Shown: positions 9,321 through 60,048 of the stretch, in pieces
How positions within the stretch are numbered: the first letter of the stretch is position 1
Layout of the letters: each line of letters begins with the position of its first letter
Source: Selaginella moellendorffii
Lineage: Eukaryota > Plantae > Lycopodiophyta
DNA: 64,000 nucleotides
Reading direction: 5' to 3'
Assembly (NCBI RefSeq): GCF_000143415.4
Contig: NW_003314377.1
Coordinates: 186,001 to 250,000 of the forward strand
Translations under genes and position numbers: made by a program
The notes under the pieces: generated by a model
Told to the model about the DNA's origin: nothing
The model's database searches: none
What the model saw: the letters and a program-made list of their open reading frames with translations, nothing else

Positions 9321-12300
9321 TCCGCACCACAAGGAACTAGCATCGTCATCACTGCACTCATCCTCATCACTACTCTCATCATCCTCATCACTGGGTTTGT
9401 AGTCCGGATCAAAACTTCCTCTTGTTTGCTTTCCTTGCCAACTGCAACTTGCAGCAGCTAGCATCGGTGTGTCCCTCACAGCGCTTAATAAGCCTACACA
9501 AATCATAAAAACTAATAAAAACAAAAAGAAAAGCATCAATTACTTACCAAATGGACTCTGCTGTGGATACACGTATTGACCTCCATCAGCCTCTGGCACA
9601 ACCATCCTGTTGGAACTTTTGACTTTGGAAATCACGTTATACAATGGTTGATCGGTCATAAGAACCATGGCGTAATTGCCATCTGAAACGACACACAATA
9701 AACCAACCGACAAATAAAAACTAAGTACCTGCCATCCATTGCTCTATCGTCCATATCTTCTTCAGAAAGTCTTCTTCCCACCTGGCTTGCTGTCCTTCAT
9801 AAACGTCCGTGCGTTTGCTCTCAATAAATAAAAAAAAGTCCTGCAGCTTGTTCTCAAGATCCACCAGCTGCAGATGGATGAAGCTATCAGGTCCGTGGTT
9901 GCCAACCCAATAAAAATGCTGCCTGTCCTCTCTTAGAAAGGCCTGAAATACGTCTGCTGTATGTATCTGATGGGGCTGACGTTTTGGAGGTCCAAACGTT
10001 GCACCAGCTGGCAACTGGAACTTCAAAGCTTGCATATTTGCAGGAAGGACGAAATTGAAGGGGAGGATGTCTTTGAGTGTGAACTCAAATACTGTCTCCT
10101 TCTTCTCGTGATCATGAAAAAGCTTACCCATGTATATCATGAAGACAATGCACATAAGGTCTGATACCTCCTTAACAGAATCCAGTATAGGAGGCCATAA
10201 ATGTTTCAGCTCCGCCACATGTAAGTTCTCGATAAGATGGTAAATAAGGAGTGGAGAGAACATGATGGAAAACGAGCGCATTCCATTCCTCACGTCTTCC
10301 TGTTTCGATAATTTTATCTGCTTATTGGGTGGCGGCTCCTGTACAGTAACACCACATAAGCACTCACATAAACTTCTGAAATATCAGAAAAGTACCTCGT
10401 TGCGTAAGAGTCCAACTAAACCGCAAGACTCTAAAAATCCCCACTTATCTTTGTATCTACTACCTGGCCAAACTAGGTCCTCCCGACTGATCAGGGTCCC
10501 CAACAGCGCAACATAAAGAGCTCGTAGCACCAACAAATACCTCTTGTCCACAAGGTAGTGAAAATAATAACCGCGTTTGATAGTACTCCACGCGTTCCTT
10601 ATTGTATCACGGAGATCGGTTTGGCTGAGATCTTGATTCACCTGTAACAAGCATACAGTTTTCTCATCAAGAAAAAGGACAAAAAAGAACGGAAGAAACC
10701 TTTTCGTAGAACTTCGAAGCTTCAAGATGAGGGTGCTCAGGCATCAACCCTCTCAAAAGGTGATTAAGCATGCGAGGATTCCCTCCTGATAACTTTATCA
10801 GCTTCCTTAGTCCGTCCTTCAACTCAAATGGCTTCTCCATGCCGAGAGTATTTCCTAGTCTTGAAAGGAAGATCGTCGTTACGTCTACCACCTCCTCCTC
10901 CTTCAGAGGCCTAATAGGTATAAAAATACTTGTTACCTTCTCTGTGTAACGCATTGTGGCCCCAGAAAATCGGGTCGTTGCTACTTGAAGTACAGGAAAC
11001 GTCATGCCACCTCGGTTACTTTTGATATGTCGAACGTAGGCCGAGAAAGCTTCATGAATCCAGGACGATGCAGCTGGGAGACCTCGCTGAGGTCGGGCCT
11101 TGTTGACTTCATCGAAAAACCAAGATAGAAAAATTCGCTTGTCGGCAGGAACCTTAAGACCGGTTCGAATGAAGTCGATCACATCTCCGAAAGTCAGCAC
11201 ATTCCTCAGGCCCGGAAACATGTCATCCAACTCCTTGAGAAAATCAGCATATGCAGTCGTATTCATTGGACAAAGGGCTGCATGCAAGGACCGAAGCGCC
11301 AAAACCTGTGCGCCTTCCAGGCCGTTCTCGAGCAGAAGTGCACCCCCCGCCATGGTCGTTTCAACCGAATGGTACATACTAAGATCTTTGCCAGTCTCCA
11401 GCACGTTGTTCACCATTTCCTTGAACTGAGTGGCAAGCCCACTGTAACCTAGCTGGTCCTCGAGAATGGCATCTATAGTCCCTGTTTTTGTGTCCCTCTC
11501 CCACGCTTCTCTGAGAAGAGCTGAGAGACATGTCCCGACAGTTGTTTTGCCTGCTCCGGGGAATCCGATGACCATCAACATGAACTCTTTTCGTTCGAAA
11601 TCTGAGGCACTGGAAGTCTTGTTCATGAAAGTTGCAAAGACCCGTGCAGTGGCAGCCATAAGATGCTGAATCATCTCCTCCCTTCCGACCAAAGTAAAAT
11701 AATCTCCGAAGTCCGTCTGTAAACACGGCTGCCCACCGTTGTCCACAAGAGGCAACTTGTAGCCTGGCACCCTCCTCGCCGGCATTCCGTGAAAAACCCT
11801 TGCATCCTCCAGTTGTTTCGTGTATACATCCAGCAACCTCGACACTACAACACAAACTTGTCAGTAGTAGAAGCAAAAAGTAAAAGACGCCAAAAACGAT
11901 AGCCACAGTATACACCAACACATTAAGCAGAAAACCATACGAAGAGACCATGATGCCACAGATGCCGAGAACCCAGGTAACACGTTCTACAAGCTACACA
12001 AGACGCCATGTCGACAGCCACCAACAAAGGCAACAGCCGATCACAATCACACAGACACCATAGCCCCAGCTATAGCCGCACTAGCACCACGACAAGTAAA
12101 ACGCCAAGTTGCAGCCAAGTCGTGGTTTTGCTCAGCAAGTGCTTACCTGGCGCAGCTTGAAGGGTTATCGGCGGGGCCTCTGAAACAGAAATATAAACTT
12201 GTCAGTACTCGGCAATAGCCAGCGGGGCAAGCACAAAACAGCGCGAATAGCCCATGCGAGGAGGCAAAAACAGAAGAAACGATCAAAGCAGACTCCTAAG

Positions 12301-12611
12301 AGACCAAGATTCCAGCAGAACGAGCACATCCCAGGCACCAAATACACACCAAAATGCTACGTACGTGTAGGAGCCTTTGTTGCCCGAATAGTATGAGAAG
12401 ATCCAGGCACATACGTAGACCTGCTCAGGCCGTCTTCCCCTGCCTGTAGACGTCTCCACCTGACCCTCCCTTGCTCATAGCGCTTCACACTGATAAAGAC
12501 AGCCGAGAACTCCTGGAGAACATCATTTACTGCCACTCTACCATCGTTAAGGTAAAACTCGCAACCTTCTGCCCCATCTATGTCTTCAATGAACTCTACA
12601 ATCTCCTCCAT
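9318..12611 (-). CDS. Crinkler/RHS (CR)-type protein: header + P-loop NTPase + PD-(D/E)xK nuclease + acidic tail. Exons 12611-12365, 12179-12147, 11844-10700, 10641-10396, 10338-9729, 9682-9548, 9493-9318 (863 aa)
   Basis: Six GT-AG introns with compatible phases give a 2592-nt open frame. Motifs: Walker A GFPGAGKT, Walker B SWFFDEVN, SGGNPRML, nuclease-like GNHGPDSF...LFIESK, and a C-terminal D/E/S tract. Confidence 0.8.
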
Positions 12612-12769
12612 ACTGTTAACCCTAGCCGGCTGTCCGGGTATATTCAGTCTGATCCTTCAGACATAGAAGTCTACTTGGTGCTTTTGGTGTTAATGATCGA
12701 TGAGAGGCGGTGCTGCTGGTCAGAGTAGCAGAATTGGTTGCAATGGGAGGATCCAATTGTGTGTGATCG

Positions 12770-14100
12770 TGCATCAATTGCCAATTCTGGGCATCTGGGA
12801 GATTCGAGGAGGATATTTGATGGCTAGCTGGAATGCGATGCTTTCGGTATATGCTCGGGCCGGATGTTTCCCAGATGCCACAGGAATTTTCGATGCCATG
12901 CAAGCAAAGAATCTAGTCTCGTGGACTGCCATGTGTGTGCGCATATTCCAAGCACGGGCATCTAGACGAGGCAAAGATTTTTCTTGGTGCTATGCCCGCG
13001 TGGAATGCTGTTTCCTTGATAGCGATAATCGTTGCATGTGGTTTAGCTCGGGGTAATCAGCTGTTTGAGATTACGGAAGCCAAAACTTTGGTGGCGTGGA
13101 ATAATACTCGCCGCAAATGCCCACTTTGCGATTTCTCTGGTGATCTTTCGTGCGATGCCGCAGTGGGATCTGGTTTCGTGGATCACGCTACTGGGTGGAA
13201 TTTCTAGCGATCTTGATGCTCTGCTCGAGATTTTCCACGCAATGCCCAAGCACGGCATCGCGCTGCTATCGGCTCACGCGACTAGAGGCGATGCCCAACT
13301 CGTGTTTGAGCGGATGCCGGAGAGAAATTTTGATCTCCTGGATCGCGATGCTCAATGCATGGATCTTGTGCGGCGACCTGGAACTCGCGAGAGAGCTCTT
13401 CGATCCCATGCCGGTGAGGAACCTGTTTCTCGAACCGCGATGATCGATGCGTATTCACAGCGAGGCGATCCGTGCCAGGCCAGGAGCCTCTTCGCCCAGA
13501 TGGCGGAGCAGAGCCTGGCCTCCTGGAACGCGATTCTTTCCAGCATCGCGCGCTTTGGAGATCTGGAAGAAGCCCGAGAGATCTTCGAGAGGATGCCGCA
13601 GTGGAATTCTTTGTCCTGGAACGCAATGCCGGCCGCCTACACCCTGTCCGGAAAGAATCTGGAAGAAGCCCAGGCGCTGTTCGCCAAGATCCCCCGCAAC
13701 CAGCTCTCTTGGAACCTGATGCTCACAGCCGCTGAATCATCGCTGGAGCTCTTCGCATTGATGCCGGAGCGCGACGTCGTATCCTGGACTGCACAGCATT
13801 TGCCCGCGCTCACGGACAAGCACTGTCCAGTGGGATTCCCGGGGTTGATGAACACTAGAGCTCGGGGCTGCAGAGCTCCCGCGCGGAGAAGCTCTGAATC
13901 CCATCGCCTGGGCCACGCTCCTGGCGCCCTGATCCATTCCCCGCGACCATGGTCGCGACCACGGCGTGACGCCCACTACGGCTGCATGGGACGTTTGTGG
14001 ATGATGGGGTTTGTAGATGGAATGATACGGAGGGCGATAGGTGTGGTACGGAGGTGGCCGGGGTGGATCCAGATGCCGCTGCGCTAACGTATCGATCTCG
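12770..14100 (+). pseudogene. PPR pseudogene (decayed copy of 2350-3950)
   Basis: Colinear with the intact PPR (YSQRGDPCQARSLFAQM, LSGKNLEEA) but broken across several frames. Confidence 0.92.
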
Positions 14101-26265: not shown

Positions 26266-28138
26266 CTACGCAGCGGCGATGCTTTTCAGGTACGCTTGCC
26301 ACCCAGCGTTTCTATAGTCGCGAGAGGCCAAGGCAGGATTTTTGGCCTTGATAATTCCTCTTCCAACGATGATTATATCACTCTGTCGGTCAGCAATCAC
26401 CTATAACATCCACAGGAAGATTAGCAAATCAAGATACAAAAGAGAAGAAACAAACGAGCAAAGAGAAGAACCGAACGAGCAAAGAGAAGAAACGATCGAG
26501 CAAAGAGAAGAAACGGACGAACAAAACACAAGAAACGAACGAGCAAACAGAAGAAAACCCTTACATTTTCAGGAGTGTTGTACTGCTGGCCAAGATCATC
26601 GCCCCCGGCGCTCATCTGCACTCCGGGAGTCATGTGGATGAATCCGGGATCCGCAGCTTGAGCCCACGCAGCAGGATTTATGGAGATGAATCCCATGACG
26701 AAGTCTGGATTGTCCGCAGCCATTTTTTCTGCTGCTGCTGTGTACTCGCCCTGTGCTAGAGTTCCTTTGGAGCTCATCTCGGCCAGTAGCAGCAAACCCC
26801 GCCCCTTCGCCAGTCCCTATAGCCAACAAAAGACGTAGAGTTTACCATGAATGCTTGAAACTTTTTGGGACTTCTAAACCTTGAGCTTGAGGCCGTCAAT
26901 GATTCCAGGGCCAGGCACTACGTGCGCGTTTGTGATATCCGACCAGTCCACAATCTTAAACGGACCCCTACAAAGAAAAACTCTGCTTTGAGTACAAAAA
27001 CATCTGAAGTAAAAGGATTGTATCTTACCCCTCGTACTGCATACAAACCGTGTTGCCGATATCAGCAAACTTCCGGTCTTCAAAGATCATAAAATCGTGC
27101 TTCTCCGCAATCTGCAAACACACATTTTGTATATCAGAGGCCAAAAGGACACGAGAAAGAAGAAGCAATAGACTCACCGCACGAAGCTTGACTGTGAGCT
27201 CCTCGCTAAAATCCGAGAGCACATCAACGTGCGTCTTGAGCACGCATATCTCGGGCCCGACCTGTATGACCATCACAAACCTTGGATTCAGTGACAAACA
27301 AAAAAAAAGAAAGACAAAACGAACTCACAGCGTCGGCAAGCTTGAGAAGCTCCTCGGACGTCGCGACGTCCGCCGCAACACTCAAGTTAGTCTTCTTCCG
27401 CTCCATGAGCTCCAAGAGTTTCTTCCCAGCAGCATTCTGCGCGAGCACGGCCCTTTCTCCATACGCCAACCTCTTTGGCTTCTTGGCGGCGACAAGAGAA
27501 GAAGCTCCAGGAGGGGTTGAAGGAAGCTCCGCCCTGTTAGATCGAACAAAGCTCTTCACGGACGCCGCCACCTCCTCGCTCACTCTCCCATGCTTCACCA
27601 GAACATCCACCGCGTAGCTCAGAGTGATGGCGGAGTGGAGCCTCAATCCGTGCTTGCGAAGGTTGTCGCCGCCACCCTGCTCTCTATCGATCAACACCAC
27701 CACGTCCGAGACCTTAAGCCCGGCGGCGGTGAGAGGCTCCACGGTCTCGAGCACCGATGCGCCGCTCGTCACTAGATCCTCGATCACCAGGCACGACTGG
27801 CCGCTGGAGAAGAAGCCCTCGATCGCCTTGCGGGTGCCATAGTCCTTGACCTCCTTGCGGCGCATCACCATTGGCACATTGTGCGCGAGGGAGATGCACG
27901 TCGCGATGGGCAGCGCGGTGTAGGGGACGCCGCAGATGAGGTCGAACGGGGCGGCGGGGGCGGCGGCGGCGGACCAGAGCGCGGCGGAGACCTGGCGGAG
28001 CAAATCAGGGTAGGAGACGATCACCCGGAGATCGATGTAGATTGGCGAGATGATGCCACTCTTGAGCTTGAACTCGCCGAATTTCACCGCCTCCGCGTCG
28101 GCGAGCGCAAGGACCAGCGCCGCCGCCTCCTCCCGCAT
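26266..28138 (-). CDS. UMPS: Bifunctional UMP synthase (OPRT + OMP decarboxylase)
   Basis: [41 protein letters not shown]; [47 protein letters not shown]. Confidence 0.96.
26436..26558. repeat. About 21-bp minisatellite (about 5 copies) in the last UMPS intron
   Basis: The unit AACGAGCAAAGAGAAGAA(A/C)CG is repeated in tandem. Confidence 0.85.
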
Positions 28139-29556: not shown

Positions 29557-30209
29557 TAAGAGATAAAAGAAAAACAGAAGTTCTATTAATCTATTACAAT
29601 GCAAGTGAAACGAAATAACGTACCAGATCGACTAGGACATCCCACTACCACGACCAACTAAAGCACAATAGGCTGTAATGTTGTTGCTCCAAACCTCCAT
29701 GCAAACCTCCAAACCTTGCATGACTTGGATTGGAACGTGTACAAGAGATCCAGCACCAGGATCCAGCCCTTCCTCAGTTCAGCTCGAAATATTGGCCTAC
29801 TCCTCTTGTTGTGCTGGTTGGAATGCCGGAGCTCCACCCGATGTCGTTCCGCACAGACCAGCCGCTGATCAACACCCTGGTGCTCCCCAAATTCTCCAAG
29901 GTGGCTGCGATTGGAGACAAGGGAGCTCTGCTCGAGGCTAGGATTCCAGCTCAAATCCAGGGTCCTCACGGCAGATTGGTTCTGCGTATCTTCGATCCGA
30001 GAGCAGGAAGCCATCTCGACACGTCTTTTGTTCTCTGTTTGTTCTCTAACTGAGACGAAATGTTCTGGGAATGTGATTCGGGGAAGGAACTCGAGGTCGT
30101 GGCGATCGTCCAGCCAACTCTTCACGGTATCTATATGCTTTTGTGAGTTCTTTTCTTGCATGTCCTTCTGTTCAGGTCCAACGGCTGCTCTTCGAAAACG
30201 TACAGAGCT

Positions 30210-30645
30210 GCATCATGTCGCCAATCTACATCGATCTCCGGGTGATCGTCTCCTACCCTGATTTGCTCCGCCAGGTCTCCGCCGCGCTCTGGTCCCCCGG
30301 TGCCGCGTTCGGAGCCTCTCACCGATCGCTAGAGAGCAAGGTGGCGGCCGCAAGCATGGGTTGAGGCTCCACTCCGTCATCACTCTGAGCTACGCACGAG
30401 AAGGAAGAAACAATAGACTCACCGCACGAAGCTTGACTGTGAGCTCCTCGCTAAAATCCCAAGAGCACACATCAACGCGCGTCTTGAGCACGCATGTCTC
30501 AGGCCCGACCTGTATAAACATCACAAAACTTGGATTCAGTGACAAAGAAAGCAAGAAGGAGAAAACGAACTCACAGCATCGGCAGGTTTGAGAAGCTCCT
30601 CTGACGTCGCGACGTCCGCCATGCGCTCCATGAGCTCCAAGAGTT
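30210..30645. pseudogene. Scrambled UMPS fragments in both orientations
   Basis: The + strand carries [26 protein letters not shown] and HGLRLHS pieces. From about 30395 a copy of 27150-27420 follows in the original orientation. Confidence 0.88.
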
Positions 30646-31447: not shown

Positions 31448-32467
31448 CTACGTAACTTCCACCCCGACCCGGTCACACTCCATCAATGTCCCCGCCTGGT
31501 CACACATTGCTCGTTCTCGCACGTCGGACACCGCCTTGAGATAGCTGTACCTTAGCTCCATTCCATCCCACAGCCGATGGAAGGCAGTGATGCATTCGCC
31601 CCTATCCTTTCTATGGCCGCTCCTGGCACTCAAAGCCTCGCTAACCAATCCCAAGTTTGAGTTCCTGGGATCGCCCCAGTCCCTGGGACTGCCCTCCACC
31701 AGCAGCGGACCCTTCTTGCTACGGCTTGAAACCAGGAAGTTCATAGCGATGTCTTCGCAGTTGATAGCATCATCCACGTACTCCTTGACACCAGCCGGCA
31801 TGGAGCAAGAGTACAAGTAAAGGTTCTCGGTCGCCAAGATCATGAACTTCGTCAGGAGTATCGAGTACCGGATTGAGCTCTTGGTGTAGATCCATGACTT
31901 TGTACCCAGCTGGAAAGAGTGAGACCGCGGGAAGAGGCCCACTATCCTGTCTTGATTCTCGGACCACACTTGGAAAGCGAACTTGAGGCTGGATAGATCC
32001 ACGCTGATATCATCGTCACAAACCAAGACCGCCTGCGTGGAAATCTCCTTCCTTGGAAGAAATCTATTGTTGAGGCTGGAGGAAGGCTGGCGGACGACGT
32101 AAATCGGCGCACCCAAGCTCTCGAGATTGGCGTTGAGCAGCACCTGGTCTGGCGTGGACGTGTTGCCCCAAAGAATGTAGACGGCGTCCACCACAGGCGA
32201 GGCGGAGTACGCCTGTGCGTGCTGCTCCAGGATGTGGATTCTGGCCTCGGAGAAGCCATTCATGAGCACTGTAAGCTGATCGGGGCGAAGATCGATCGAT
32301 TGCGGGTACCTATCTCGTTGGCAAACCCCTGTTTCTCCTGCAAGATCTAGGCGCTTACTTGCTGGAGTGGCGGAAAGGAAGAAGAATGCCGCCAATGCTG
32401 TGAAGATCACGCCAGATCCGAGCAACAGGATGGAGAAGCCCAGGCGCTTTCGCCTCTTTCTTGCCAT
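31448..32467 (-). CDS. Glycosyltransferase family 64 (EXTL/EPC1-like), single exon
   Basis: N-terminal TM anchor; SLNNRFLP, AVLVCDDD, YSILLTK, NCEDIAMNF. Confidence 0.93.
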   Translation of the reverse strand: MARKRRKRLGFSILLLGSGVIFTALAAFFFLSATPASKRLDLAGETGVCQRDRYPQSIDLRPDQLTVLMNGFSEARIHILEQHAQAYSASPVVDAVYILWGNTSTPDQVLLNANLESLGAPIYVVRQPSSSLNNRFLPRKEISTQAVLVCDDDISVDLSSLKFAFQVWSENQDRIVGLFPRSHSFQLGTKSWIYTKSSIRYSILLTKFMILATENLYLYSCSMPAGVKEYVDDAINCEDIAMNFLVSSRSKKGPLLVEGSPRDWGDPRNSNLGLVSEALSARSGHRKDRGECITAFHRLWDGMELRYSYLKAVSDVRERAMCDQAGTLMECDRVGVEVT

Positions 32468-32577
32468 GGAAATGTTTAGGGTTCCTTGATTGAAGGGATT
32501 TTTTGCTCCTTCGAAATTTTCCCGCCCAAAATACTTTCTCGAAAAAAATTCTAGGGTTCTACGGTGGTTTTGGGGCG

Positions 32578-35500
32578 ATGCGAGGGGAGGCGGAGGCGCT
32601 GATCGTGGCGCTCGTCAAGGCGCAGGCGCTTAAGTTCGGTAAGCTCGACAGCCCGATCGACATCGATCTTGGAGTGATTTGCTCGTACCCTGATTTGCTA
32701 CACCGGGTTATCGCTGCGCTATGGTCTGCCGTAGCCGAGCGTGCGACGTTCGATGTCGTTTGCGCTGCGTCACACACGGCCGGGCCGATCGCAGTGTGCT
32801 TCGCACTCGTTTACAGGGTACCAATGGTGATGAGAAGAAGGGAGGTGACGGACTCTAGAGGCATTGATGGTTCCTTTGAGACTGGCCAAACCTGCTTAGT
32901 GATCGATGATCTACTTGCTATCGGGGCTCCGGTGGCCGAAACTGTGGAGCTTCTCAGTGGTGCTGGGCTCAAGGTCTCGGACGTGGTGATCCTGGTCGAT
33001 AGAGAAGAAGGTGGTGCCGAGAATCTACGCAAGAGTGGGCTTAAGGTCCACTCGGCCATCACTTGGAGCGACATAAGGGACGTTCATGGGAGAGTGACTG
33101 CCGACGCTGCTCCACCTGGAGAGGGTTTCGTGAAGACGACTTCGACTCAAGCTGATACATCTGTAACAGAGAAGGCATCGCCTCAAGATACGAACTCGCG
33201 CTTCGTCGACGCAGATATGACTGGATGCGATGATCTCAAAACTCCTGACAATGTTAGTAACTTTTTTTCTTTTCTCTTACGTCGTTAACTGTTTGTCTAA
33301 CTGATGTTCTACAGGTTGTTGGTACAAGTAGAGGTGGCGAAAGGCGTTCTTTTCCCCCTCGTGATGAAGAGGACGATGAACTGTGGATCGTAAGCGAGAA
33401 GTGGAGCACGGGTCGCGAAAGTAAACCAGGGACGGCTGCTAACCAGGTGCAAGTTAACAGTGGCAATTCAAAGAACAAAGCTGTTGGAGCAATTGAAACC
33501 CGCACTCATGAAGCAGATGATTTGACCTTGAAGACTCCGGAATGCAAGCGGTCGTGGTGGCCTCATGGCAAGGGCGCTAGATCGGAAGTCATTGATATCA
33601 GTGATGAGGAGAGTAATGGGGAGACGTCTATACTAGGTGAGAAGCGCAAGCTGCCATTGAGCTTCACACCTCGAGGCCGTCGGGAGACAGTCGCAGTGAA
33701 GGAAGAACCGGGATGGCGTGGTACGGGTGTAAAGAAGAAAGAGCCTCCCGGGAGCTATGCTCAAACAGCTGCCTGGAATGCAGCAACATCGTCTTACGGC
33801 TGGATAGTTGCTCCAAAGATGGAAGAGGTTTTGCCAATGGACAGAAGGTTTGGTAAGCCGGCATCGTCGGGTTCAGAACCGGGATGGCGGGGTACGGGTG
33901 TAAAGAAGGAAGAGCCTCCGGGGAGCTATGCTCAAACAGCTGCCTGGAATGGAGCAACTTCGTCTTACGGCTGGGGAGTTGCTCCAAAGATGGAAGAAGT
34001 TTTGCTGATGGGCAGAAGGTTTTATCAGCCGGCTTCGTCGGGTTCGTCTGTCCATGCAGGCCCAAAGAAGAAGGAAGAACCAGTTCAGAACACGAGCACA
34101 AACACAACTCCAAATCAGCCTGCTCAACCGGTGCCCGTGGTTCGCCGGAATGGTCAAGCCAGCATAGCAACTTCGTCTTGCCGCTGGACAGCTCCTCCAA
34201 ACAAGGAAGAAGTTTTGCCAACTGGTAGAAGGTTTGATCGGCCGTCGTTGTCGGGTTCGCGTGTCCATGCAGGCCCAAAGAAGGAGCCTTCGAGTCAAGC
34301 AACTCCAAAGAAGGAAGAACCAGTTCACAACACGAGCACAAACACAACTCCAAATCAAGCTGCTCAACCGGTGCACGTAGACAAATGTCTTCGCCGGATC
34401 TTGGAGGTACACTTGCACTGACTGCTATTTGGATGTTTACATTTTCTTTTCCCACAGAGAATGATCACTCCTGATACAAACGAAGAGGCCACTCTAGATG
34501 AGGGAATGATGACTATCAATCTTTTGAAACATCAGGTATACTTCAAAATCTTCTATGTTTCACGGGTTTAAAGCGATCTTTGTAGAGAATAGCTTTAGCT
34601 TGGATGGTGAAGAGCGAGGAGCGTGGAAATTGTTCTGGTGGCTTTCTAGCAGATGACCAGGTGAGCCTTTTGTATGTCATATTGGTTGAACAATCTCCTT
34701 GTCGTTGTCTCTAGGGTCTTGGCAAAACAGTGTCTACGATAGCTCTTATTCTCAAAGCTCGGTCGCCAATTCACCTGCTCAATCCGGAAACACAAGCCAT
34801 TAAACCTGAGATTAAACCTGAGATCAAACCTGAGCTTATGCAGAAGCCGGAGCCAAAAAGAAGGGGTGGCACTCTTGTCGTATGCCCGACAAGCGTTTTG
34901 AGACAGTGGTATCATGAGATCGAGGAAAAAGTTACAGCGGCGGCAAGGCTTTCAACACATATTTATCACGGCGGTAACAGGAAGAGGTGTCCCTACGAGT
35001 TAGCCAAATATGACGTTGTGCTAACCACGTACTCAATTGTAACAAATGAGGTGCCTAAGCCAGATGAGGAGATAGAAGCAGATGAGGAAACGTATGCAGA
35101 CTATGGCAGCAGCTGTTCGCAAGCATTTTCAAATAAGAAGACGAAGAAAAGGACCCCGACTCGTGGGGCAGGACCTCTAGCCGAAGTCAAATGGTTTCGA
35201 GTGGTGTTGGACGAGGCACAGACGATAAAAAATGCAAAAACACTAGCAGCGTACGCTTGCTGGGGACTGAAAGCCGACAGACGATGGTGTTTGTCGGGTA
35301 CACCACTTCAGAATACCATCGACGACCTCTTCAGCTACTTTCGATTCTTGCGCTTCGACCCGCTGGATTCATACTCAACCTTCAAGATAAAGGTGAAAGA
35401 ACCAATCTCCCGAGATCCGAGCACAGGATATGCAAAGCTACAGATGATACTCCAGGTGATTATGCTTCGTCGAACAAAAGGCAAGTTCTCAATCTTTTGA

Positions 35501-36826
35501 CTTAAGATTGCCGGGGCCAAAGTTTTGATTTTACAGAAACTGTCATTGACGGAAAGCCCATTCTCCAGCTACCTGAAAAGCATGTGACCATGCTACAGGC
35601 GGATTTCAGCAAAGAGGAACGCGAGTTCTACGACAGTTTGGAGCAGCGCTCACGCGATAAGTTTCAGGTATTATGTTCATTCCTGAGTTCTAAACTTTTT
35701 ATTTTGCTTTTGTTCCAGAGCTACCAACGACGTGGGACTGTTCAAAAAAACTACGCGAACATCATGGTTTTGCTCCTGCGCCTGAGACAAGCATGCTGCC
35801 ATCGGTCCCTTGTTCCGGAAGATAAAGAGTCAAAAATCGAAGATGAAGAGTCAAACATCGATGCAAAGGAAAACGTATCCATATGCACAATATGTGAAGT
35901 AAGTGGTAAACGCAGTTGTTTCGTTACTGACGTTTAGTTTGACACTGTCAGGATGCTCCCGAACAGCCTTTTCTTAGCTGCTGTGGTCACGTCTTTTGCT
36001 CCCAGTGCATCTCAGAGAAATTGCTGACAAGCGAGGAATTGGCGGTCAAGTGTCCCGCTCCAGGCTGCTCTTGCACACTAGAGAGCTCTTTGCTGTCTAG
36101 CTTCATGTCCTTGGATTCCAACGGAGGATATGAGTCGTCCTCAAAGATCAATGCCGTCATGGAGCGCCTGATGAATCTTCCCGTGACGAGTCCTGCAGCA
36201 GCCGGGAAGAAAGCTGTTACCGAGAAAGCTCTCGTCTTCTCGCAGTGGACAAGTTTGCTTGATCTGGTCGAGCCTCGTCTAGAAAAGGCCGGCTTGGAAT
36301 TCAGAAGGCTCGACGGCACAATGTCGGTCATGGAGCGGGACGCAGCAGTTTGCGAATTCAACGAAAAGCCCGAGGTACACTCGTAGCATCTGTTTTTCCA
36401 TATTCTAATCTCTCTTTTTCTTTTTTGGTTTTCTCTTGGAGGTGTCTGTGATGCTCATGGGCCTTAAAGTTGGAAGCTTGGGCCTCAACATGGTAGCTGC
36501 GTGCCATGTCCTTCTTCTCGACGTGTGGTGGAATCCCACGGTGGAGGATCAGGCCATCGATCGAGCTCATCGCATCGGACAGACCCGGGACGTTCACGTC
36601 ACGAGGTTCACTGTGAAGAAAACCATTGAGGACCGGATCCTAGCTTTGCAGGTACCAGAAAGCTCTTTCTCTCTGTAGACATCAAGATCACTGTGACTGT
36701 GTTCTATTTGCACAGGAACAAAAGAAGCAAATGGTTTCGTCGGCATTTGGAGACAGTGGGGGGAGGAACAATCGACGGAACCGGCTCACCATGGATGATC
36801 TGCGCTTCCTGTTTACGAGTTATTAA
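32578..36826 (+). CDS. Chimeric gene: degenerate OPRT domain + repeat region + SNF2-RING helicase (RAD5/16 group, CHR27/28-FRG-like)
   Basis: Exon 32578-33252 (OPRT-like) splices in phase 0 to 33315-34406. Downstream exons give LLKHQ-RIALAWM...[41 protein letters not shown], a C3HC4 [35 protein letters not shown] and [10 protein letters not shown]. Confidence 0.85.
33705..34375 (+). repeat. Coding tandem repeats within the chimeric gene
   Basis: A 171-bp unit ([24 protein letters not shown]...MEEVL...RRF..P.SSGS) occurs twice plus a partial third. [20 protein letters not shown] occurs twice. Confidence 0.9.
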
Positions 36827-36935
36827 CTTTTCTCTCATGATTTATTAACTTTTCCCGCGACTTTTACTCTGAATTGTATAGCATTAATTCGAAGTTACGT
36901 CTCTATACACTTATTAGGGCTTTGAGGGTGGCGAT

Positions 36936-38200
36936 GTGCCAGTTGACCAAGCAGTGCAAGTGGAAGAAGAGAGCGGCTTCTTCTCCAGCACACATGTCCA
37001 ATTGGAGCCGTGGCCACATTTTGGAGAGGATTTGGGGGCCTTCATCAATGGGCTGGACAACACGGAGAAGCGGCTATCGACCTTTTTTAGGGAGCGCAAT
37101 CACTTGCTCGTTGCCTCAGAAGAAAGCATAATGCACGCCCTCAACTTCATTGTCCTCCCGGTGGTGGAAGAAATGGCCGAGCAGCTACGCATCCCGTTCC
37201 GGCTGACGGGAGAGCCTACTGGTTTCCCACCCAGGTTGTTGTTGACACAAGCACGGCCTCTTCTCCTTTCTCGTGCGAAGGAGCCTCCAGGAACGAACCA
37301 TCGGGGGTGCATGGCGTCGGACAGGTAGTCGGCCCCTGGAACGTGGAGCTGACCAAAGTGGGGACTGATGACCGCAGGGTTGAATACCACGTCGAGCGTC
37401 TCTTTGGCAGCATGGTGCTGGACGAGACGCGGGTGGGCTACATCTCGAGCTACCACCAGACTGTTTTCTTTCGCAGGACAGATGCCACCAGCAAGCGCCT
37501 CCAGTTCTCTCCCGTGTTCGGGAGGAAAGACGCAACGGTAGGAGCTTTCTTGTTCTTCCTCCACGGTCTAAGCAAGGACTCAAAGCTTGGATTGGGCCGG
37601 GAGCTTTTTCCCTTTGCGTCCACCCGTGCTCCACACTCCTAGGCATCCGTCCCGCACGTCGAAGCCACGCTCGGCTACAAGTGGTGGATGCAAGCAGACT
37701 CGGCGGGATGTCCGTGCCGAGCATACAGGAGCTCGGACTCACGGGCCGCGTCGCGGGCTGGGCCAGTTTCGGGAACGTCTTGGAGGGGTGTTTCAAGAGC
37801 ACTGGGATCAGGATCGTGCTCAAGACGTTTGATCTGCGGTGGGAGGGCGCGGCAGAGGCGTTCGTGCAGGAGCAGAAGGCCTACATTGCTATGCAAGACC
37901 TCTATGGTGTATATACGCCAACTTTCTATGGGGTGGGCAGGCTACGCGGTCTACTTGGCGCTGTCGGATGAGGGCACAAGGAAGCTTGGAGATATCCGGG
38001 TGACGAGGCTCACTCTGGCTGCCTTGAGGTTGGGGCTGTACAAAATCCACACAAGGGGAGTTCTTCATGGGGATCTCAGGAGGCACAACGTGATGATTGC
38101 TCGCGATGGAAGGCCCCGGTTCCTCGACTTCAACTGCTCTAAGATGCAGCCTAACGCTGGGAAATGCTGGAGGAGATGAACCAAGTGCAAGAGCTTCTAG
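36936..38200 (+). pseudogene. CR-type nuclease-like + kinase gene, frameshifted
   Basis: LEPWPHF...SEESIMHAL; RLFGSMVLDETRVGYISSYHQTVFFRR...LQFSP; IVLKTFD...QEQKAYIAMQDLYGVYTPTFYG; IHTRGVLHGDLRRHNVMI...RFLDFN. Split over four ORFs (at least 3 frameshifts). Confidence 0.7.
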
Positions 38201-38306
38201 AGGAGAACAAACTAAAGCAGCCACGTTCGAGTAAAAAAAGGGGGTTTCACTAGTTTCTGGTAAGTTATGATTTTCTAAATCTTTTTCTAGCAACCTAGAG
38301 GCATGG

Positions 38307-38655
38307 CACCTCCACCAAGGCAATGGTACCTGGCCTTCCATAGGCTGGTGTGATGGAAGAGACAGTCGTTGGGGAGGTACTCAGTTAGTAGCAGTTTTGT
38401 TGGAGGAGACCAGTACATTCTTAGTCACTATTTATCAAACTAGAGAGATTCTTACAGCAATTGCCACTCTGCCATCTTGTAAATAGTCCCAGTGGTCCAT
38501 ACCCGGTCACACAGTCCTTGTAGACAATAGTTTTGGTTCCTTCCTGCCAGTTCTCATAGTGCACGGGATGTTTGAGTCGATCTTGCTGATCACACACCTG
38601 CGCTTGAGTCTGGAGAAGGTGCATGTGTAAACGAGCATTTCAGCGGGAGTCTTCC
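38307..38655 (-). pseudogene. Fragment of the LRR-RLK kinase exon
   Basis: [24 protein letters not shown] and MEGQVPLPWWR match 16065-16520. Confidence 0.9.
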
Positions 38656-39052
38656 CTCGTCAATTTATTCTGATGTCCATGATAACCATAGCCTTCAGTG
38701 ACTGCACAGTAGCCTAAATTGTGAGTTTTATAAATGCAAAATTCTTAACTATATTCAATAGAACCTTCTACATGTACATGGGAGGCATATTGACGAGATC
38801 ACAGTACCATGATAAAGAGAAAAGGAGAAGGGATATATGACTTACCTGTTTCCCAAAGACAAATTATAATAATAAAAGATAGAAAAAGAATACTGTATTG
38901 TCTTTCATCCTGTTTGAGACCGGACATCCTACTACAGTTCTGCGGTCAAGGAACAGTTGCGAAGTTCTAGAAGAGTCCACATAACGCTAAATTTGAAGTC
39001 TCAGCACAATTTGTATTTAAGCTGGAATAAACTTGAATACAATCCCACATCA

Positions 39053-39457
39053 ATGGCATACTATTTAGTAATCTGTTCTCTGGCTGTGCTTTCAGCTGTG
39101 GTACTTGAACAATCTCAAGTCTGTTCCCAAGGTAAATACCAAAGATTTTAAGAGAAATTAACTTATATATATATATATATAGATTTGCAAGCAATTGTAC
39201 AACGCATATGTCACGAATGTGCTGCAATAAACACTGGAAGAGCATGTGATTTATGCAGTGTTGTCAAAGGGCCTTCAAATGTGGAAATAGAGTGTTCCGA
39301 GCATTGCTATCATCGAGACAGTTGTAAGCCTTGTGATACTTATAATCAAGCCACGAACATCAGCTTCTGCAAGAAAATTTGTGGTGAAAATTATCTGAAA
39401 AACTTTAAATTGTGCAAGTATTGCCCAGCTGATGCCCCAACTCCAGAACCATATTAA
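39053..39457 (+). CDS. Small secreted cysteine-rich protein (117 aa; exons 39053-39131, 39183-39457)
   Basis: Hydrophobic signal MAYYLVICSLAVLSAVVL, a phase-1 GT-AG intron containing (AT)n, and 12 paired Cys in exon 2. Confidence 0.72.
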
Positions 39458-43404: not shown

Positions 43405-46045
43405 GGTGGGTGCAAATTAAATCAGTTTGTTTCCAGAGTGATCTGGGAGGCTCGCCAAGTGGAACAAATGTTCAGATTAAAATGCATGTGAGAAAAGCCG
43501 CTGCAAAAAGGATATGTAAAGTGTTTGTACTAACTTTATGAGAGCATCGACCAGGTGCTGGGATTAATACATATGTTGATGTCTAAATCTACTTTAATTT
43601 GTTACTAGCACAAGAATGCACTTGTGAGCCAGACAATTGCAACCAAATCTTTCACAGCTTTGATAGAAAAGGAGAGGCATGCTTTCTTTGCAGGTCTTGA
43701 AAGCAAGGCAAAGGAGGAAGGTGGGACGCAGTTGCAGTTTTGAGAATTAGCAATGTCCTGAATGTGAACCCTCTTCCGAATGTGTCTAGGGAGGGTTGGT
43801 TTTAAATAATATATTGAAAGTATTTGTTAAAAATATATATAATGGTCAAAAAAATATTTGAGTTACTTGATTAAAAATTGAAAGTGATGTTTTTCTTGTG
43901 TTGGTAAAGTCATGATAAAGTTTAAATTATTTCCAGAATAAAAGTTATTATAGTAATGAGAAAATAAAAAATTTAATTTAATTACAATTCTAGATAATTT
44001 TATAAAAATAAGTTCCAATTTAAGTTAAGAATTACCTCAAGAAGTGTACTCAAATTTTGTAATACTTCTATCAAAAGTTCCATATATATTTCTTTGAGTT
44101 GTTGTTAAATTTTCAGAAAAATACTTATCTTCATTCTCTGGAAATTTTAACTAAAATCACATTATTCTTGTTTTATAAGTTCTAATTATTTACCCCGAGT
44201 GGTGTTCTGAAGGCACTGTTCCTTATACTCAATTGATTAGTTTACGACCTCTTCCTCTTTATTCCACAGCTCCTTTTTAAAATGAAGGATGGATAATAAA
44301 GAAACTCAAATAAATATAGAAAGGTAATTTTATATATTTATAAATGTTTTTAAATATTAAAATTTTAAAGATGTGAGTGAGTATACCTTTTATGAGATTT
44401 GTTTGCAAGTAAGAATAATAAATAAATCCACTTTAATTTCTTCAAAATAGTTATACTATCCAGAATTTTAAATAAGTTGAATTTTCTTTTAACTTATTTA
44501 TCAATTTACTTTTTTCTTTTGCTATAATGATTTTCATTCTTTGATGTAAGAAGGATTATAAATCCATGTAATGCTATTATAAATGTTTATTTTAGAGATT
44601 GTTACTCTAACCAATATGCCATACAATGAGTTATTCTCTTTTATTTTGGCCATGCTAAATAAATAAAGAAACTTATAGCCAATATAGTAAAGAGTACTAA
44701 AGTTATAAGTGTTGTTATATTTATGCTTTTATAGGGTTAAAACTTTTACTATTTTATAATAGATGTCAATTGCTTTTTACTGTATAAATTTAGTTATTGC
44801 TAAGTTTGTTTTGTGACTCCAAAAGTTTGTATTGGAATGAATATGTGTTTGTCATGATAAATTTTTTTCATATGTTATTATAAAGGTTTTAAGTTAATGA
44901 ATAAACTCTTCTTATACCACGACACTACATAGGCAATGTAGAGCACATTATGTCAATCACTAAGTTTTCCATAGAAATTTTGAAAGATATTGAACTCATA
45001 TTTGCTGTCATAGTGGTTTCTCATTAATAATGTCACATTAGGTCCTACCAAATCTTGGGAAATTGCAATTGGAGGGGCACAAACAAATAATGTAGTACAC
45101 TCTCATGCAAATTCAATCTTTTTTTGTTCCCTTGAAATGCCTATATATGAAGATTTTTTATGTTTATCTAAATAAAACAAAAAGTTTATGGAGCTCTATG
45201 GATTAAAGAGGAATAACACTAATGCTATCAATTATTACAAAAGGTATTATATTACTTTTGTCTTGCAAGATGACTATTGACCAAGTTCATTTCAAAAAAG
45301 AGTAAAGACTCTTATATGGATTTCTAACTATTTTCCAATTCTAAAGATTGAAGTTTTGATCTATTTAAAGTAAAACTTTGAAGATTTGCAACAATGGGAT
45401 CAATAAATAAACCTCTTTCAATGAAAAAATGAAAAAGCTTAAGAAATTATTATTGTAGATCTTGAGAATTTGTTAATCATTTAATAACATTCTTGAGAAC
45501 TTGATGAAAAAAGGAATAGCTATGGCTATATAATCTTATTCATTGGAATCCAAAACGGCACTATGTTGGGAAAGATGGTGAGAATAATAGTATGCAATAT
45601 GGAATCACCCATGCCCAAATGCTTGCTAAAGAAATTGATGATATATTTTTGTGCTCTTATGTGTGCAATTTAAGCATTGATAAAGATATCAGTAGCGGGT
45701 GCAAATCAAATTAATTTGTTTTTAAAGAGATCTATGAGGCTTGTCAAATAGAACCAATGTCGAGATCAAAATACATATGAGAAAAACCATTGCAAGAAGG
45801 ATATATCAAGTGTTTGTATTAACTTTATAGGAGTATTGATTAGATATTAGGAATGGTATATATATTGATTTCTAGATTTTGAAGATCTACTTCAATTTGT
45901 TATAAGCATAAGAATGTATATGTGAGCTAGACAACTACAACCAAGTCTCTTACAGCTTTGATAGAAGGAGATGCATGCTTTTCTTTACAAGTCTTGAAAG
46001 TAAGGTAAAGAAAGAGGGTGGGATGTAGTAGTGATTTTGAGGATT
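43405..46045. repeat. Diverged direct repeat pair (about 43405-43750 and about 45695-46045)
   Basis: GGGTGCAAAT.AAAT.A.TTTGTTT...ATGTGAGAAAA.C..TGCAA.A.GGATAT...ACAGCTTTGATAGAA is shared by both copies. Confidence 0.8.
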
Positions 46046-57170: not shown

Positions 57171-58232
57171 ATGTCCATCATTCCTGGACTTCCAGATGAG
57201 CTGGTGTTGGAACATGTCCTGCCGTGGGTACCACCATCTGCAATGCTGACTTCCAAAGCCTTTGAGCGCAGGATTAGAGAGTTAAAGGAGAAGCGACTAC
57301 TGATTTTTGGTTGGAGTCAGGGCTTGATCTGCGGTTGCAAACTTGGCGACGTATTGAACTTCCTCCAGGAGTCAAAGCAAATTGCTTCTGTGAAGGTAGA
57401 GAGCTCTACGGCTTCTTTTCTGAAAAATTCACTCTGGAAAGATGTTGTCGGGTGCTGGCTAGATTAGATGACGATTTCTTCAGTAAGGGCAAGAAGGCTG
57501 CCTGGAACCAATTAATCCAGTGGTGTGGTAGTACATGGAAAACGTCCTACTTTTACCCGACACACCTAATCTCTGGCCAAGGAGGACATGTTCGGAAGAT
57601 CTATTTTAGCAGAGTCTCAAATTTCTTGGCAGCAACCGAGATTTATGTCCCATCCAAAGATGGTGAAGCTATCGAGTATCACAAGTTCGACCATGGAAAA
57701 TACAGCTGGATTTCCTCAAGGCTGATTGACAAGTTGGGGCTACAAGGAGATAAAAATTTTGTGTGTGTGACGAAATACCATGGTCTGTATGCTGCGGTAT
57801 GGAACGAGGCAGAGGGTCAGTTGAGTATTTGTCATGGCACTTGTCCAGCAAGCTCCAGGTCGTGGAAAACATTGTTCTACCCGTGGAACAGAGGGTTGGA
57901 CATGGATAGCCTTATCTGGGCAAAAGTTAGTGACATCCTTGACAAGTTAGTGGATTCAAAGTTGATGAGCTTGGATGCCAATACGTTTAACTCTATGGTG
58001 TTGAAGACGGATGTTTTGAAAGAGCAGAAAGCAAAGCTTAACTTTGGGATGCAATCAAAAAGATTTTATATGGGCAACAGGTAGCGGAATTGGATATCAA
58101 GTTCAGATTAACCCAAGTGGAACTAAATTCAAAAGAACTGATCTCCAAGTTGAAAGTCACCCTATTACGGAAACATGTTTAAACAACTGTGGATTGATAC
58201 GACTTTACGATGACGATGAAGATGAAGATTAG
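57171..58232 (+). pseudogene. F-box-type gene, apparently frameshifted
   Basis: Starts MSIIPGLPDELVLEHVLPWVP (F-box-like). The remaining coding-like sequence continues in other frames (57311-58084, 58044-58232). Confidence 0.6.
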
Positions 58233-59245
58233 CAAAACCAACGAACAAAAGAGAAGAAATGAATGAGCAAAGAGAAGAAAGGAACGAGCACAGAGAAGAA
58301 AACAAATAAATAGAGTTCTCCCGTGATAAAATTTGCACTCGGGGAATTTAATGAACCATCAGAATTTGATAGCTGTTAGAGGTTTTTATATGATCTTCCA
58401 ATTCCGATGGGCGAATTTACGAAAATGGACCAATCTTTCTCTCAAAAGTTTGCATCATACCTTTGTTCCAGGTCCTGACCAGGCCATCCGATTTGGAGTC
58501 CGAGCTCTGTGAATGCACCACCTCCGAGCGACGAGCATCCGGGTCCTGAAAAACCGGCATTTTAGAAAGAAAGAAAGGACGATTGGATATCAAGGAAGAG
58601 GAGATAGAGTTCATATATCCGGCACATGGCATACTGCTTGAACGAAGGCCTGGAAGATCTTTGACAAGATCAGAGGCAGGAGCCCCAGCGACGAATCCAG
58701 CCAGAAATCCCAGCAGCAGCACGGATGGACGAGGCCCTACATTATCAAAATGGCCAAGAGACAGTCTATCAAAGGGAGAGTAAATAAAGGAAGACATCCA
58801 AAAGGCCCGCGGTAAAGAATGGGTTTTTTTTCGTGTGCTCTGAGTGGGAGAACAAGATAAACTGCTTGTACTTCTCCAACGCGGTGCCTCTTTTCATCTC
58901 GGCCATTGTAAACGCTCGCGAGAGCACTCCGGGATTGGTAGGTTGAGGCCATGCAGCAGGAGTTATGGAAATGAATCCGATGACGAAGTCCTGATGGTCT
59001 GCGGCCATTTCGCTGCTGCTGCTGCTGTGTAGTCGCCCTGTGCCAGAATTCCTTTGGGGCCAGTAGCAGCAAACCCCCTTCGTAGTGTAGAGTTTACCAT
59101 GAAAGCTTGAAACTTTCCGGAACTTCTAACCTTGAGCTTGAGACAGGCACTATGTGCGCGTTTGTGATGTCCGACCAGTCCACAAGACCTCTACAAAGTA
59201 AAACTTGGCTTTGAGTACAAAACATCGAAAGAAGGATTGTAGAGA
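58230..59245 (-). pseudogene. UMPS ODCase-region fragments (58230-58300 intron minisatellite; 58925-59245 exons and introns) with unrelated sequence between
   Basis: MAADHQDFVIGFISITPAAW and the intron sequences match 26420-27020. Confidence 0.85.
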
Positions 59246-59289
59246 AACACTGGAACTTCAGGCCAAGTCACAAGCAAGAGCTCGCTAAC

Positions 59290-59770
59290 GAATTTGCAAG
59301 GATACACATTCATCATGTTTCTGGCGCGTTCTTCTTGCACAGCTCCTGTGGTTAATGCAAGAATGACCATCGATTGACCAAGAGGACTGGACATTTTCTA
59401 TGGTCCTTCCTTGGACAGGACTCCACCGCCTGGTTTGTCTTTTTAAGACACTCTTCACTCTAGAAAAAACGTAGAGCCAGAAAACGTTTCGGGTTTCTTG
59501 ATATGGAGGATTGGCAACTACTGCATAGAAATGCTGCTTGAACTTGTCCGGCAGATCTTCAGGATGGTTGTAGTTGTGTATGTGAACTCAGAACCATAAC
59601 GAGAGAAGTGATGATCATACTCAAAAGAGTAGCGCACTCACTTCCACAAAAGATTTGCATCGCAAGCATAGCAATAATTAAGAAAAATTCTAAGAAGTTC
59701 CATAAACCTTAACCCTAAAACAGTCCAAAGGTAAAGATGTGATTTGATGCTTGCGATGCGAATATGATTC
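59290..59770 (-). pseudogene. EEF1A lysine methyltransferase 1 (N6AMT2)-like remnant
   Basis: FEYDHHFSRYGSEFTY / YNHPEDLPDKFKQHFYAVVANPPY / LTTGAVQEERARNMMNVYPC, with frameshifts. Confidence 0.7.
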
Positions 59771-60048
59771 CAAGCATTGGAATGTGATGACGTGCCGGAG
59801 GAAAAAAACCTTTGTGGCTTATCTAAGGATAAAGCGGCATTCCTCGGCCACAAAGCCCAGCGGACGGTCACGATTGGCGCTTCGCGCCATTCAAAGGCGG
59901 TGACCGCCGGAGACTATGAGCCACTCGTCCCGGCCATCTCCAGCCGTTCATTTGCCCTGGTTATTATCATAACCCCCCATGGTAATCTAATGCCAGCGGA
60001 CTTCTTAAGGAGAGTGAGAAGGGAATAGTCTAGGCTAAGCTCGAGGCC

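Follow-up and report, generated by a model that had tools for sequence, protein, structure and literature searches.

A UMPS-derived first exon spliced in frame to a RAD5/16-like SNF2-RING helicase in Selaginella moellendorffii

The RAD5/16-like SNF2-RING ATPases, among them yeast Rad5, Rad16 and Uls1/Ris1, human HLTF and Arabidopsis FRG1/FRG2 (CHR27/CHR28), share an SNF2 N-lobe, a C3HC4 RING placed before Helicase_C and a long disordered N-terminal region. [quoted passage not shown] Here we describe a gene of Selaginella moellendorffii in which a helicase of this kind is joined in frame to a first exon derived from UMP synthase (UMPS), whereas no described member of the group has an N-terminal phosphoribosyltransferase (PRT) fold. 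The gene lies in a stretch of 64,000 nucleotides (NCBI RefSeq assembly GCF_000143415.4, contig NW_003314377.1, positions 186,001 to 250,000 of the forward strand; hereafter the window) that matches scaffold GL377681.1 of assembly GCA_000143415.2. Its first exon descends directly from the orotate phosphoribosyltransferase (OPRT) domain of UMPS, a type I PRT (EC 2.4.2.10), and has a predicted fold matching the structure 2wns, but the product lacks the OMP decarboxylase half, and the hood, the catalytic loop and the loop that binds phosphoribosyl pyrophosphate (PRPP) are altered. PRT folds are also found in PyrR and PurR, which like the fusion are proteins with a main task involving nucleic acids. 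These PRT-fold regulators keep a working PRPP/nucleotide-binding site, whereas in the fusion the ligand-contact motifs have decayed at a neutral rate. A third comparison is with chimeric new genes such as Drosophila jingwei, which arose by partial duplication and exon capture. Here, too, the parent lies nearby, a partial copy has become a 5' coding exon that is new to the gene, and the chimeric mRNA is verified; more UMPS fragments, together with the chimera LOC9630209, belong to the same region. In the captured domain of the fusion, however, neither adaptive nor strong purifying selection is evident.

The derived gene model has ten exons and encodes 1246 amino acids, with no stop codon in any exon until the TAA at 36824-36826. 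Exon 1 (675 nucleotides, 225 codons) runs from the ATG at 32578 and ends in phase 0 at a GT donor (33253), and exon 2 is open in the same frame. Four public sequencing runs were aligned to positions 31900-36950; X1 and X5 are assembled contigs, their 'RNA' type being guessed by the index, and X15 consists of raw reads. Contigs of X1 and X5, the products of two independent studies, are spliced from 33252 to 33315 across a GT..AG intron, so that an initial annotation, made from the letters alone, was right to describe exon 1 as open and spliced in frame into the helicase (GT 33253, AG 33314). For instance, record 2 of X1 is continuous over 32553-33252 and then 33315-33779. The other eight introns are likewise removed at their predicted borders in these contigs, including the 34406/34458 junction, which the initial annotation had proposed to check along with the first, and a GC-AG intron (35481-35536, donor GCAAGT) whose splicing is confirmed by contigs from two runs. 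Since every other intron is removed in this way, the X1 and X5 contigs can be read as spliced RNA. Word depth over exon 1 was 12.5 in X1, compared with about 10 over the helicase exons, and about 5.9 in X5, compared with 8.8. The X1 contig begins 25 nucleotides upstream of the ATG at 32578, with no other ATG in between, and the -3 position is a purine (G). We conclude that the 10-exon, 1246-amino-acid frame is a real chimeric transcript.

This transcript evidence corrects the public gene model. The GenBank version, of 1524 amino acids (window 32824-39230), begins at an internal methionine of exon 1 and merges the helicase with kinase-like open reading frames downstream. Neither of its ends is backed by the RNA contigs, which stop near 36840. 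One of the downstream open reading frames (37688-38176) has a weak protein-kinase match that falls below the cut-off (Pkinase, E = 7.8e-6). On the other side, a single-exon GT64 glycosyltransferase gene (31448-32467, minus strand) stands head-to-head with the fusion gene. No more than 110 bp separate their start codons (32467 and 32578), implying that the two genes share a bidirectional promoter of very small size. The coordinates of the fusion gene and of its parent are collected in Table 1.

Table 1. Features of the fusion gene and its parental UMPS gene (window coordinates).
Feature	Position	Strand	Evidence
Minimal 5' untranslated region	32553..32577	+	start of RNA contig X1 record 2; no ATG within
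UMPS-derived part of exon 1, about 173 amino acids; predicted to be a catalytically dead OPRT-like domain (type I PRT fold)	32578..33096	+	homology, motif loss, fold model
Exon 1 tail, 52 codons, without UMPS homology, predicted disordered; in-frame ATG at 33217	33097..33252	+	
Intron 1, 62 nucleotides, GT..AG	33253..33314	+	spliced out in RNA contigs of two studies (X1 side 255, X5 side 97)
Exon 2, 364 amino acids, no Pfam domain; internal 171-nucleotide tandem repeats, SUMO-interaction-like VIDISDEES	33315..34406	+	
Exon 3 (ends LLKHQ)	34458..34535	+	gene model and RNA contigs
Exon 4 (RIALAWM...LADDQ)	34586..34660	+	gene model and RNA contigs
Exon 5, SNF2 N-lobe with GLGKT, DEAQ and LSGTPLQN; GC-AG intron after it	34715..35480	+	PF00176, E = 4.6e-47
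Exon 6	35537..35667	+	gene model and RNA contigs
Exon 7, first RING half (CTICE) at its end	35719..35898	+	gene model and RNA contigs
Exon 8, remaining C3HC4 RING and start of Helicase_C	35952..36374	+	Pfam; RNA contigs
Exon 9, Helicase_C core	36442..36651	+	Pfam, 3.6e-9; RNA contigs
Exon 10, stop TAA 36824-36826	36716..36826	+	RNA contigs stop at about 36840
Parental UMPS gene, intact; 483-amino-acid public model, OPRT + OMPdecase	26266..28138	-	Pfam, tblastn

Exon 1 is, as had been proposed, a diverged copy of the OPRT half of the UMPS gene that lies 4.4 kb away on the opposite strand. The two proteins are 54% identical over 187 amino acids (E = 4e-57; UMPS exon 1 at 28138..27227, minus strand), and at the DNA level 32578-33072 is 68% identical to 28138-27614, the match starting exactly at both ATGs with none upstream. 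Protein homology reaches to about 33096 when a plant UMPS is used as the tblastn query. Exon 1 groups as sister to the UMPS copies of Selaginella in a maximum-likelihood tree built from OPRT domains (support 99/97), with a branch length of 0.82 compared with about 0.02 for UMPS.

The helicase part was characterized by protein searches made exon by exon and, judged from its domain matches, is intact and of RAD5/16-like SNF2-RING architecture. Lobe 1 matches SNF2-rel_dom (PF00176, E = 4.6e-47) and has motifs I (GLGKT), II (DEAQ) and III. A C3HC4 RING lies between the helicase lobes in exons 7-8 (CTICE...CPAPGC; zf-RING_UBOX 9.9e-6 and zf-C3HC4 1.1e-4, both above their cut-offs). Lobe 2 matches Helicase_C (PF00271) in exons 8 and 9 (5.1e-5 and 3.6e-9), with motif VI present. 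The nearest solved structures are a Sulfolobus (Sso) Rad54-like enzyme and yeast RAD5 (6l8n). Database matches are unnamed fragments of about 50% identity, the best named one being a 'helicase-like transcription factor'. The likeness to the RAD5/16 group is one of general architecture, within which the FRG clade would be one candidate placement. Upstream of the lobes, exon 2 contains a 171-nucleotide tandem duplication (33704-33874 and 33875-34045, 91% identical) with a third partial unit, as well as a 71-nucleotide repeat with 240-nucleotide spacing (33704-34378), and these repeats encode repeated peptide units that include APKMEEVL. The same exon has a SUMO-interaction-like motif at about 33588-33614, a hydrophobic core followed by an acidic/serine run, which is kept in LOC9630209; SUMO-interaction motifs are typical of SNF2-RING proteins of the Uls1/Ris1 type.

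Damage to the hood, the catalytic loop and the PRPP loop means that the OPRT-like domain, on the evidence of its motifs, cannot be an active OPRT. Set against 119 OPRT domains, genuine UMPS keeps 47 of the 47 columns conserved at 80% or more, compared with 29 of 47 in exon 1, and eleven columns conserved at 90% or more are altered or deleted there (L25, K26, G28, Y34, R38, P72, Y73, K98, G101, E107 and S128). Six residues of the hood, FKLKSG, are deleted in the reference haplotype, and the adjoining motif SPIYIDLR reads SPIDIDLG (Y>D, R>G). Two alleles are expressed, however, and they differ in the hood by an indel of four amino acids (12 nucleotides); the second, with 12 extra bases after 32652, reads KLDSASHP, so that the loss of FKLKSG reported in the initial annotation holds for the reference haplotype but is partly haplotype-specific. 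GVPYTALP has become AASHTAGP. Changes reported earlier in the two other motifs are found again in the alignment. RKEVKDYGT aligns as RREVTD---S within a catalytic loop that reads RRREVTD---SR, with both lysines replaced (K>R, K>T) and YGT deleted, and the PRPP loop EDLVTSGAS reads DDLLAIGAP in the reference haplotype, with the acidic pair and the glycine kept and both serines replaced (Ser>Ile, Ser>Pro). In the X1 and X5 allele, an A>T change in this loop (TIGAP) restores the threonine. Besides the acidic pair DD of the PRPP motif, exon 1 retains R87, E89, D141-R142 and G145-G146. Its score against Pfam PF00156 is 18.4 bits, below the cut-off of 26.3, although genuine UMPS exon 1 is also just below it (25.4). 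An AlphaFold2 (AF2) model built on a 50-sequence alignment orders residues 1-176 as a PRT fold with a local confidence (pLDDT) of 86, and Foldseek places OPRTs at the top of the matches to it, the best entry of the Protein Data Bank being the OPRT domain of human UMPS (2wns, E = 3e-20, TM 0.69-0.79). Care must be taken with this model, because it is driven by an alignment of true OPRTs and is no proof that exon 1 folds.

Selection on exon 1 can be viewed at the level of the reading frame and at the level of the residues. The frame is open across 204-225 codons, which has a probability of 0.03-0.08 under neutrality, and the four fixed indels relative to UMPS in a protein-guided alignment are all whole codons, the polymorphic fifth being 12 nucleotides long. 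Indel counts from a nucleotide global alignment were discarded, as the divergent pair was over-gapped. Stops, indels and type of replacement combined give approximately p < 0.001 (Fisher's method, our own calculation). An open frame, in-frame indels and replacements milder than neutral, next to other duplicates in this genome that are broken, argue that the frame has been maintained. The residues tell another story. The dN/dS ratio of exon 1 against UMPS, a comparison proposed in the initial annotation, is 0.26 for the pair (dN 0.29, dS 1.12, NG86), but this is mostly because the UMPS partner is highly constrained. When replacements were polarized with nine outgroups, 42 fell on the exon-1 branch and 3 on that of UMPS, and by our arithmetic dN/dS on the exon-1 branch is about 0.5-0.75, with the NG86 dS or the four-fold-site distance as the neutral yardstick. 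In the three highest conservation classes the consensus is kept at 8/14, 21/33 and 30/48 columns (57%, 64% and 62%), with no rise as conservation increases. Neutral simulations, in which mutations were placed on UMPS codons at about 0.2 substitutions per site, give the same picture. Retention in the hydrophobic core (40/47 compared with 39.1 expected) was not above the simulated level, and neither was that of conserved polar/ligand columns, of which 23/35 are kept compared with 23.2 expected and 12/35 are changed or deleted. These values equal the neutral expectation and give no sign that the core or the ligand-binding residues have been shielded from change. The earlier suggestion that the surviving frame points to selection is thus supported in part: the frame appears to be maintained, while the residues are kept at the neutral expectation on a branch with the ratio given above.

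We consider it probable that a UMPS fragment was captured as the start codon and 5' exon of the helicase gene and has been kept open as the helicase start, with the OPRT-like domain mostly a tolerated passenger rather than a nucleotide sensor. The layout suggests that a partial duplicate of the 5' end of UMPS, reaching from its ATG to near residue 173 of the OPRT domain, landed next to the GT64 gene in head-to-head orientation, with an SNF2-RING-Helicase_C gene of the RAD5/16 type downstream. Transcription from this arrangement is seen in the contigs, in which the mRNA would start at least about 25 nucleotides before the UMPS-derived ATG, crosses the OPRT-like exon and is spliced at 33252/33315 to the nine helicase exons. 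Within the reach of the contig (to 32553) no AUG precedes the one at 32578, so that scanning ribosomes should make the 1246-amino-acid protein, in which a dead OPRT fold would be followed by about 400 disordered residues and by an SNF2 ATPase into which the RING is inserted. The helicase would then no longer be translated if exon 1 acquired a stop or a frameshift, and this would keep the frame open. Apart from the open frame, the OPRT-like amino-acid sequence appears to drift at one uniform, neutral-like rate.

Several observations weigh against capture as a mere start exon. The 5' end of the mRNA is known from an assembled contig alone, with no mapped read starts, and translation is deduced from the transcript. 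Practically none of the raw reads of RNA run X15 fall on the fusion gene, and exon 1 is left uncovered; most of the reads aligned from this run carry many differences and derive from paralogues, so that X15 is uninformative on the start site. The value of dS is uncertain, at 1.12 by NG86 and 0.75 +/- 0.18 at four-fold sites (our estimate of the standard error, n = 57), and dN/dS on the exon-1 branch can therefore only be bracketed. In addition, the replacements are significantly milder than neutral, being matched in 4-61 of 3000 simulations (p 0.001-0.02). Together with the confident AF2 model, such conservative replacements leave room for some constraint on the fold, and hence for a function.

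This last point leads to the alternative that survives best, namely that exon 1 is a neofunctionalized pseudoenzyme. OPRTs are obligate dimers, and the dead fold could serve as a dimerization domain, as a partner of UMPS or as a ligand sensor in the manner of PyrR/PurR, tying the ATPase or RING activity to pyrimidine status. An open frame with whole-codon indels only, replacements milder than neutral, a confident PRT-fold model over residues 1-176 and an exon 1 transcript as abundant as the helicase exons all speak for such a domain, as does retention of the DD of the PRPP motif, R87, E89, D141-R142 and G145-G146. However, polar/ligand and core columns are both at their neutral expectation, consensus retention is flat across conservation classes, and damage extends to the hood, the catalytic loop and the phosphate loop alike, the hood even differing by four amino acids between expressed alleles. 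The need to translate the helicase accounts equally well for the open frame. On balance we regard a neofunctionalized pseudoenzyme as unlikely. The fuller proposal, in which the dead fold is a working module that dimerizes the SNF2-RING protein, pairs with UMPS or binds a ligand of the pyrimidine pathway, and the ATPase or E3 ligase is thus tuned by nucleotide supply, seems to us more doubtful still. The nucleotide-sensing domain of the initial annotation, coupling nucleotide status to chromatin, finds no support in ligand columns kept as neutral drift predicts and in 42 changes compared with 3.

Alternatively, exon 1 could be a long 5' leader, with the helicase translated from a downstream AUG (Met214 at 33217, or 33819) through an internal start site or leaky scanning, and with the OPRT-like frame open by chance or acting as a translational brake. 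In-frame ATGs do exist at 33217, in the tail that does not derive from UMPS, and at 33819 in exon 2. For this reason the helicase is not strictly without an alternative start, and the earlier statement that it had no other evident start exon must be narrowed, although exon 1 does supply the first AUG. The neutral probability of meeting no stop is small but not negligible (0.03-0.08), the public GenBank model likewise starts at an internal methionine (32824), and depth in X5 is somewhat lower on exon 1 than on the helicase (5.9 compared with 8.8). Against a leader, the contig has its first AUG at 32578, in a context with a purine at -3. Leaky scanning is made unlikely by the further ATGs that precede the junction, three in frame (32824, 32830 and 33217) and seven out of frame (32721 to 33251). 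All five indels are whole codons, and the combined test (about p < 0.001) speaks against a free-running leader. Translation from a downstream AUG is accordingly improbable in our judgement. Finally, an artefact, in which read-through or a mis-assembled contig joins the transcript of an independent OPRT pseudogene to that of the helicase, is very hard to credit even though the support consists of assembled contigs with a guessed RNA origin and the raw-read run has no exon 1 coverage, as the same GT..AG joint occurs in two studies with flanks of 255 and 97 nucleotides, the contigs remove all other introns precisely and depth is even across the joint.

The surroundings of the captured exon hold further material from the same parent. 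A mosaic of UMPS scraps, 82-94% identical, occupies window positions 30173-30645 (30204-30306 and 30324-30395 on the plus strand, 30395-30620 on the minus strand), and these scraps are much younger than exon 1. A second, older fragment at 58224-59900, corresponding to the half for OMP decarboxylase, shares 73% identity with UMPS 26643-27022, is disrupted across several frames and matches a piece on scaffold GL377704.1 at 85% identity. This fragment may represent the other half that the duplicate behind exon 1 has lost. The initial annotation had called the nearby UMPS scraps frameshifted, and the pieces at 30.2-30.6 kb and 58.9-59.2 kb are indeed broken, in mixed frames and orientations. Within the UMPS span on the opposite strand are five tandem 21-nucleotide units (AAAGAGAAGAAACNAACGAGC-like; 26418-26565), with related repeats near 58224-58303. 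Elsewhere in the window, G+C content falls sharply to 27% at 44001-46000, compared with 45-55% in the gene-rich part.

Related sequences were also found on scaffold GL377704.1. A UMPS paralogue at 9616-12811 has 92% DNA identity to the UMPS of the window and adjoins a second copy of the fragment found near 59 kb; the public model of this paralogue (P0019, 449 amino acids) includes frameshifted stretches. P0019 had been tried as an allelic locus or a relative, and was set aside because it leads to this paralogue instead. The same scaffold carries LOC9630209 (P0002), which matches window 33546-35104 and joins an unrelated N-terminus of 299 amino acids to a copy of exon 2 that begins at residue 85 and is frameshifted. 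The exon 2 copy is about 97% identical to that of the window, relative to which it has deletions of 8, 4, 11 and 26 nucleotides. LOC9630209 is highly expressed, with a depth of 89 in run X7. This run ('organism B') was considered as an independent relative and rejected, its GT64 sequence being nearly identical and its high-depth contig being LOC9630209. A locus from the second haplotype was sought through the GT64 protein, and only the window's own scaffold was returned.

Searches beyond these scaffolds bear on how new the architecture is. An exhaustive HMMER search with exon 1 over 1.84 billion representatives found no fusion and no second pseudo-OPRT among the best 150 of 2395 matches, a search in which fusions clustered with SNF2 helicases could be missed. 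Those best 150 matches are proteins of the OPRT/UMPS type, at most 55% identical (the strongest about 50%) and none longer than 841 amino acids. A word-indexed protein search with exon 1 gave one bacterial OPRT, within a length window of 124-394 amino acids that excludes UMPS and any fusion. A search with exon 2 gave a single named relative, LOC9630209 of S. moellendorffii, which is a different chimera. In the literature, a full-text search returned no paper on a gene fusion of OPRT and SNF2.

The locus presents a transcript-supported new architecture, in which a chromatin/DNA-repair ATPase takes its start codon and an N-terminal fold from the partial duplicate of a housekeeping enzyme gene. 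Were the captured domain functional, it would tie pyrimidine metabolism physically to an SNF2-RING protein, an unusual connection, but such a function is unlikely on present evidence. Nearby one still sees the parent gene, several decayed fragments related to the exon and another chimera built from this material, and the locus can serve as a test case for the decay as opposed to the re-use of captured enzyme domains.

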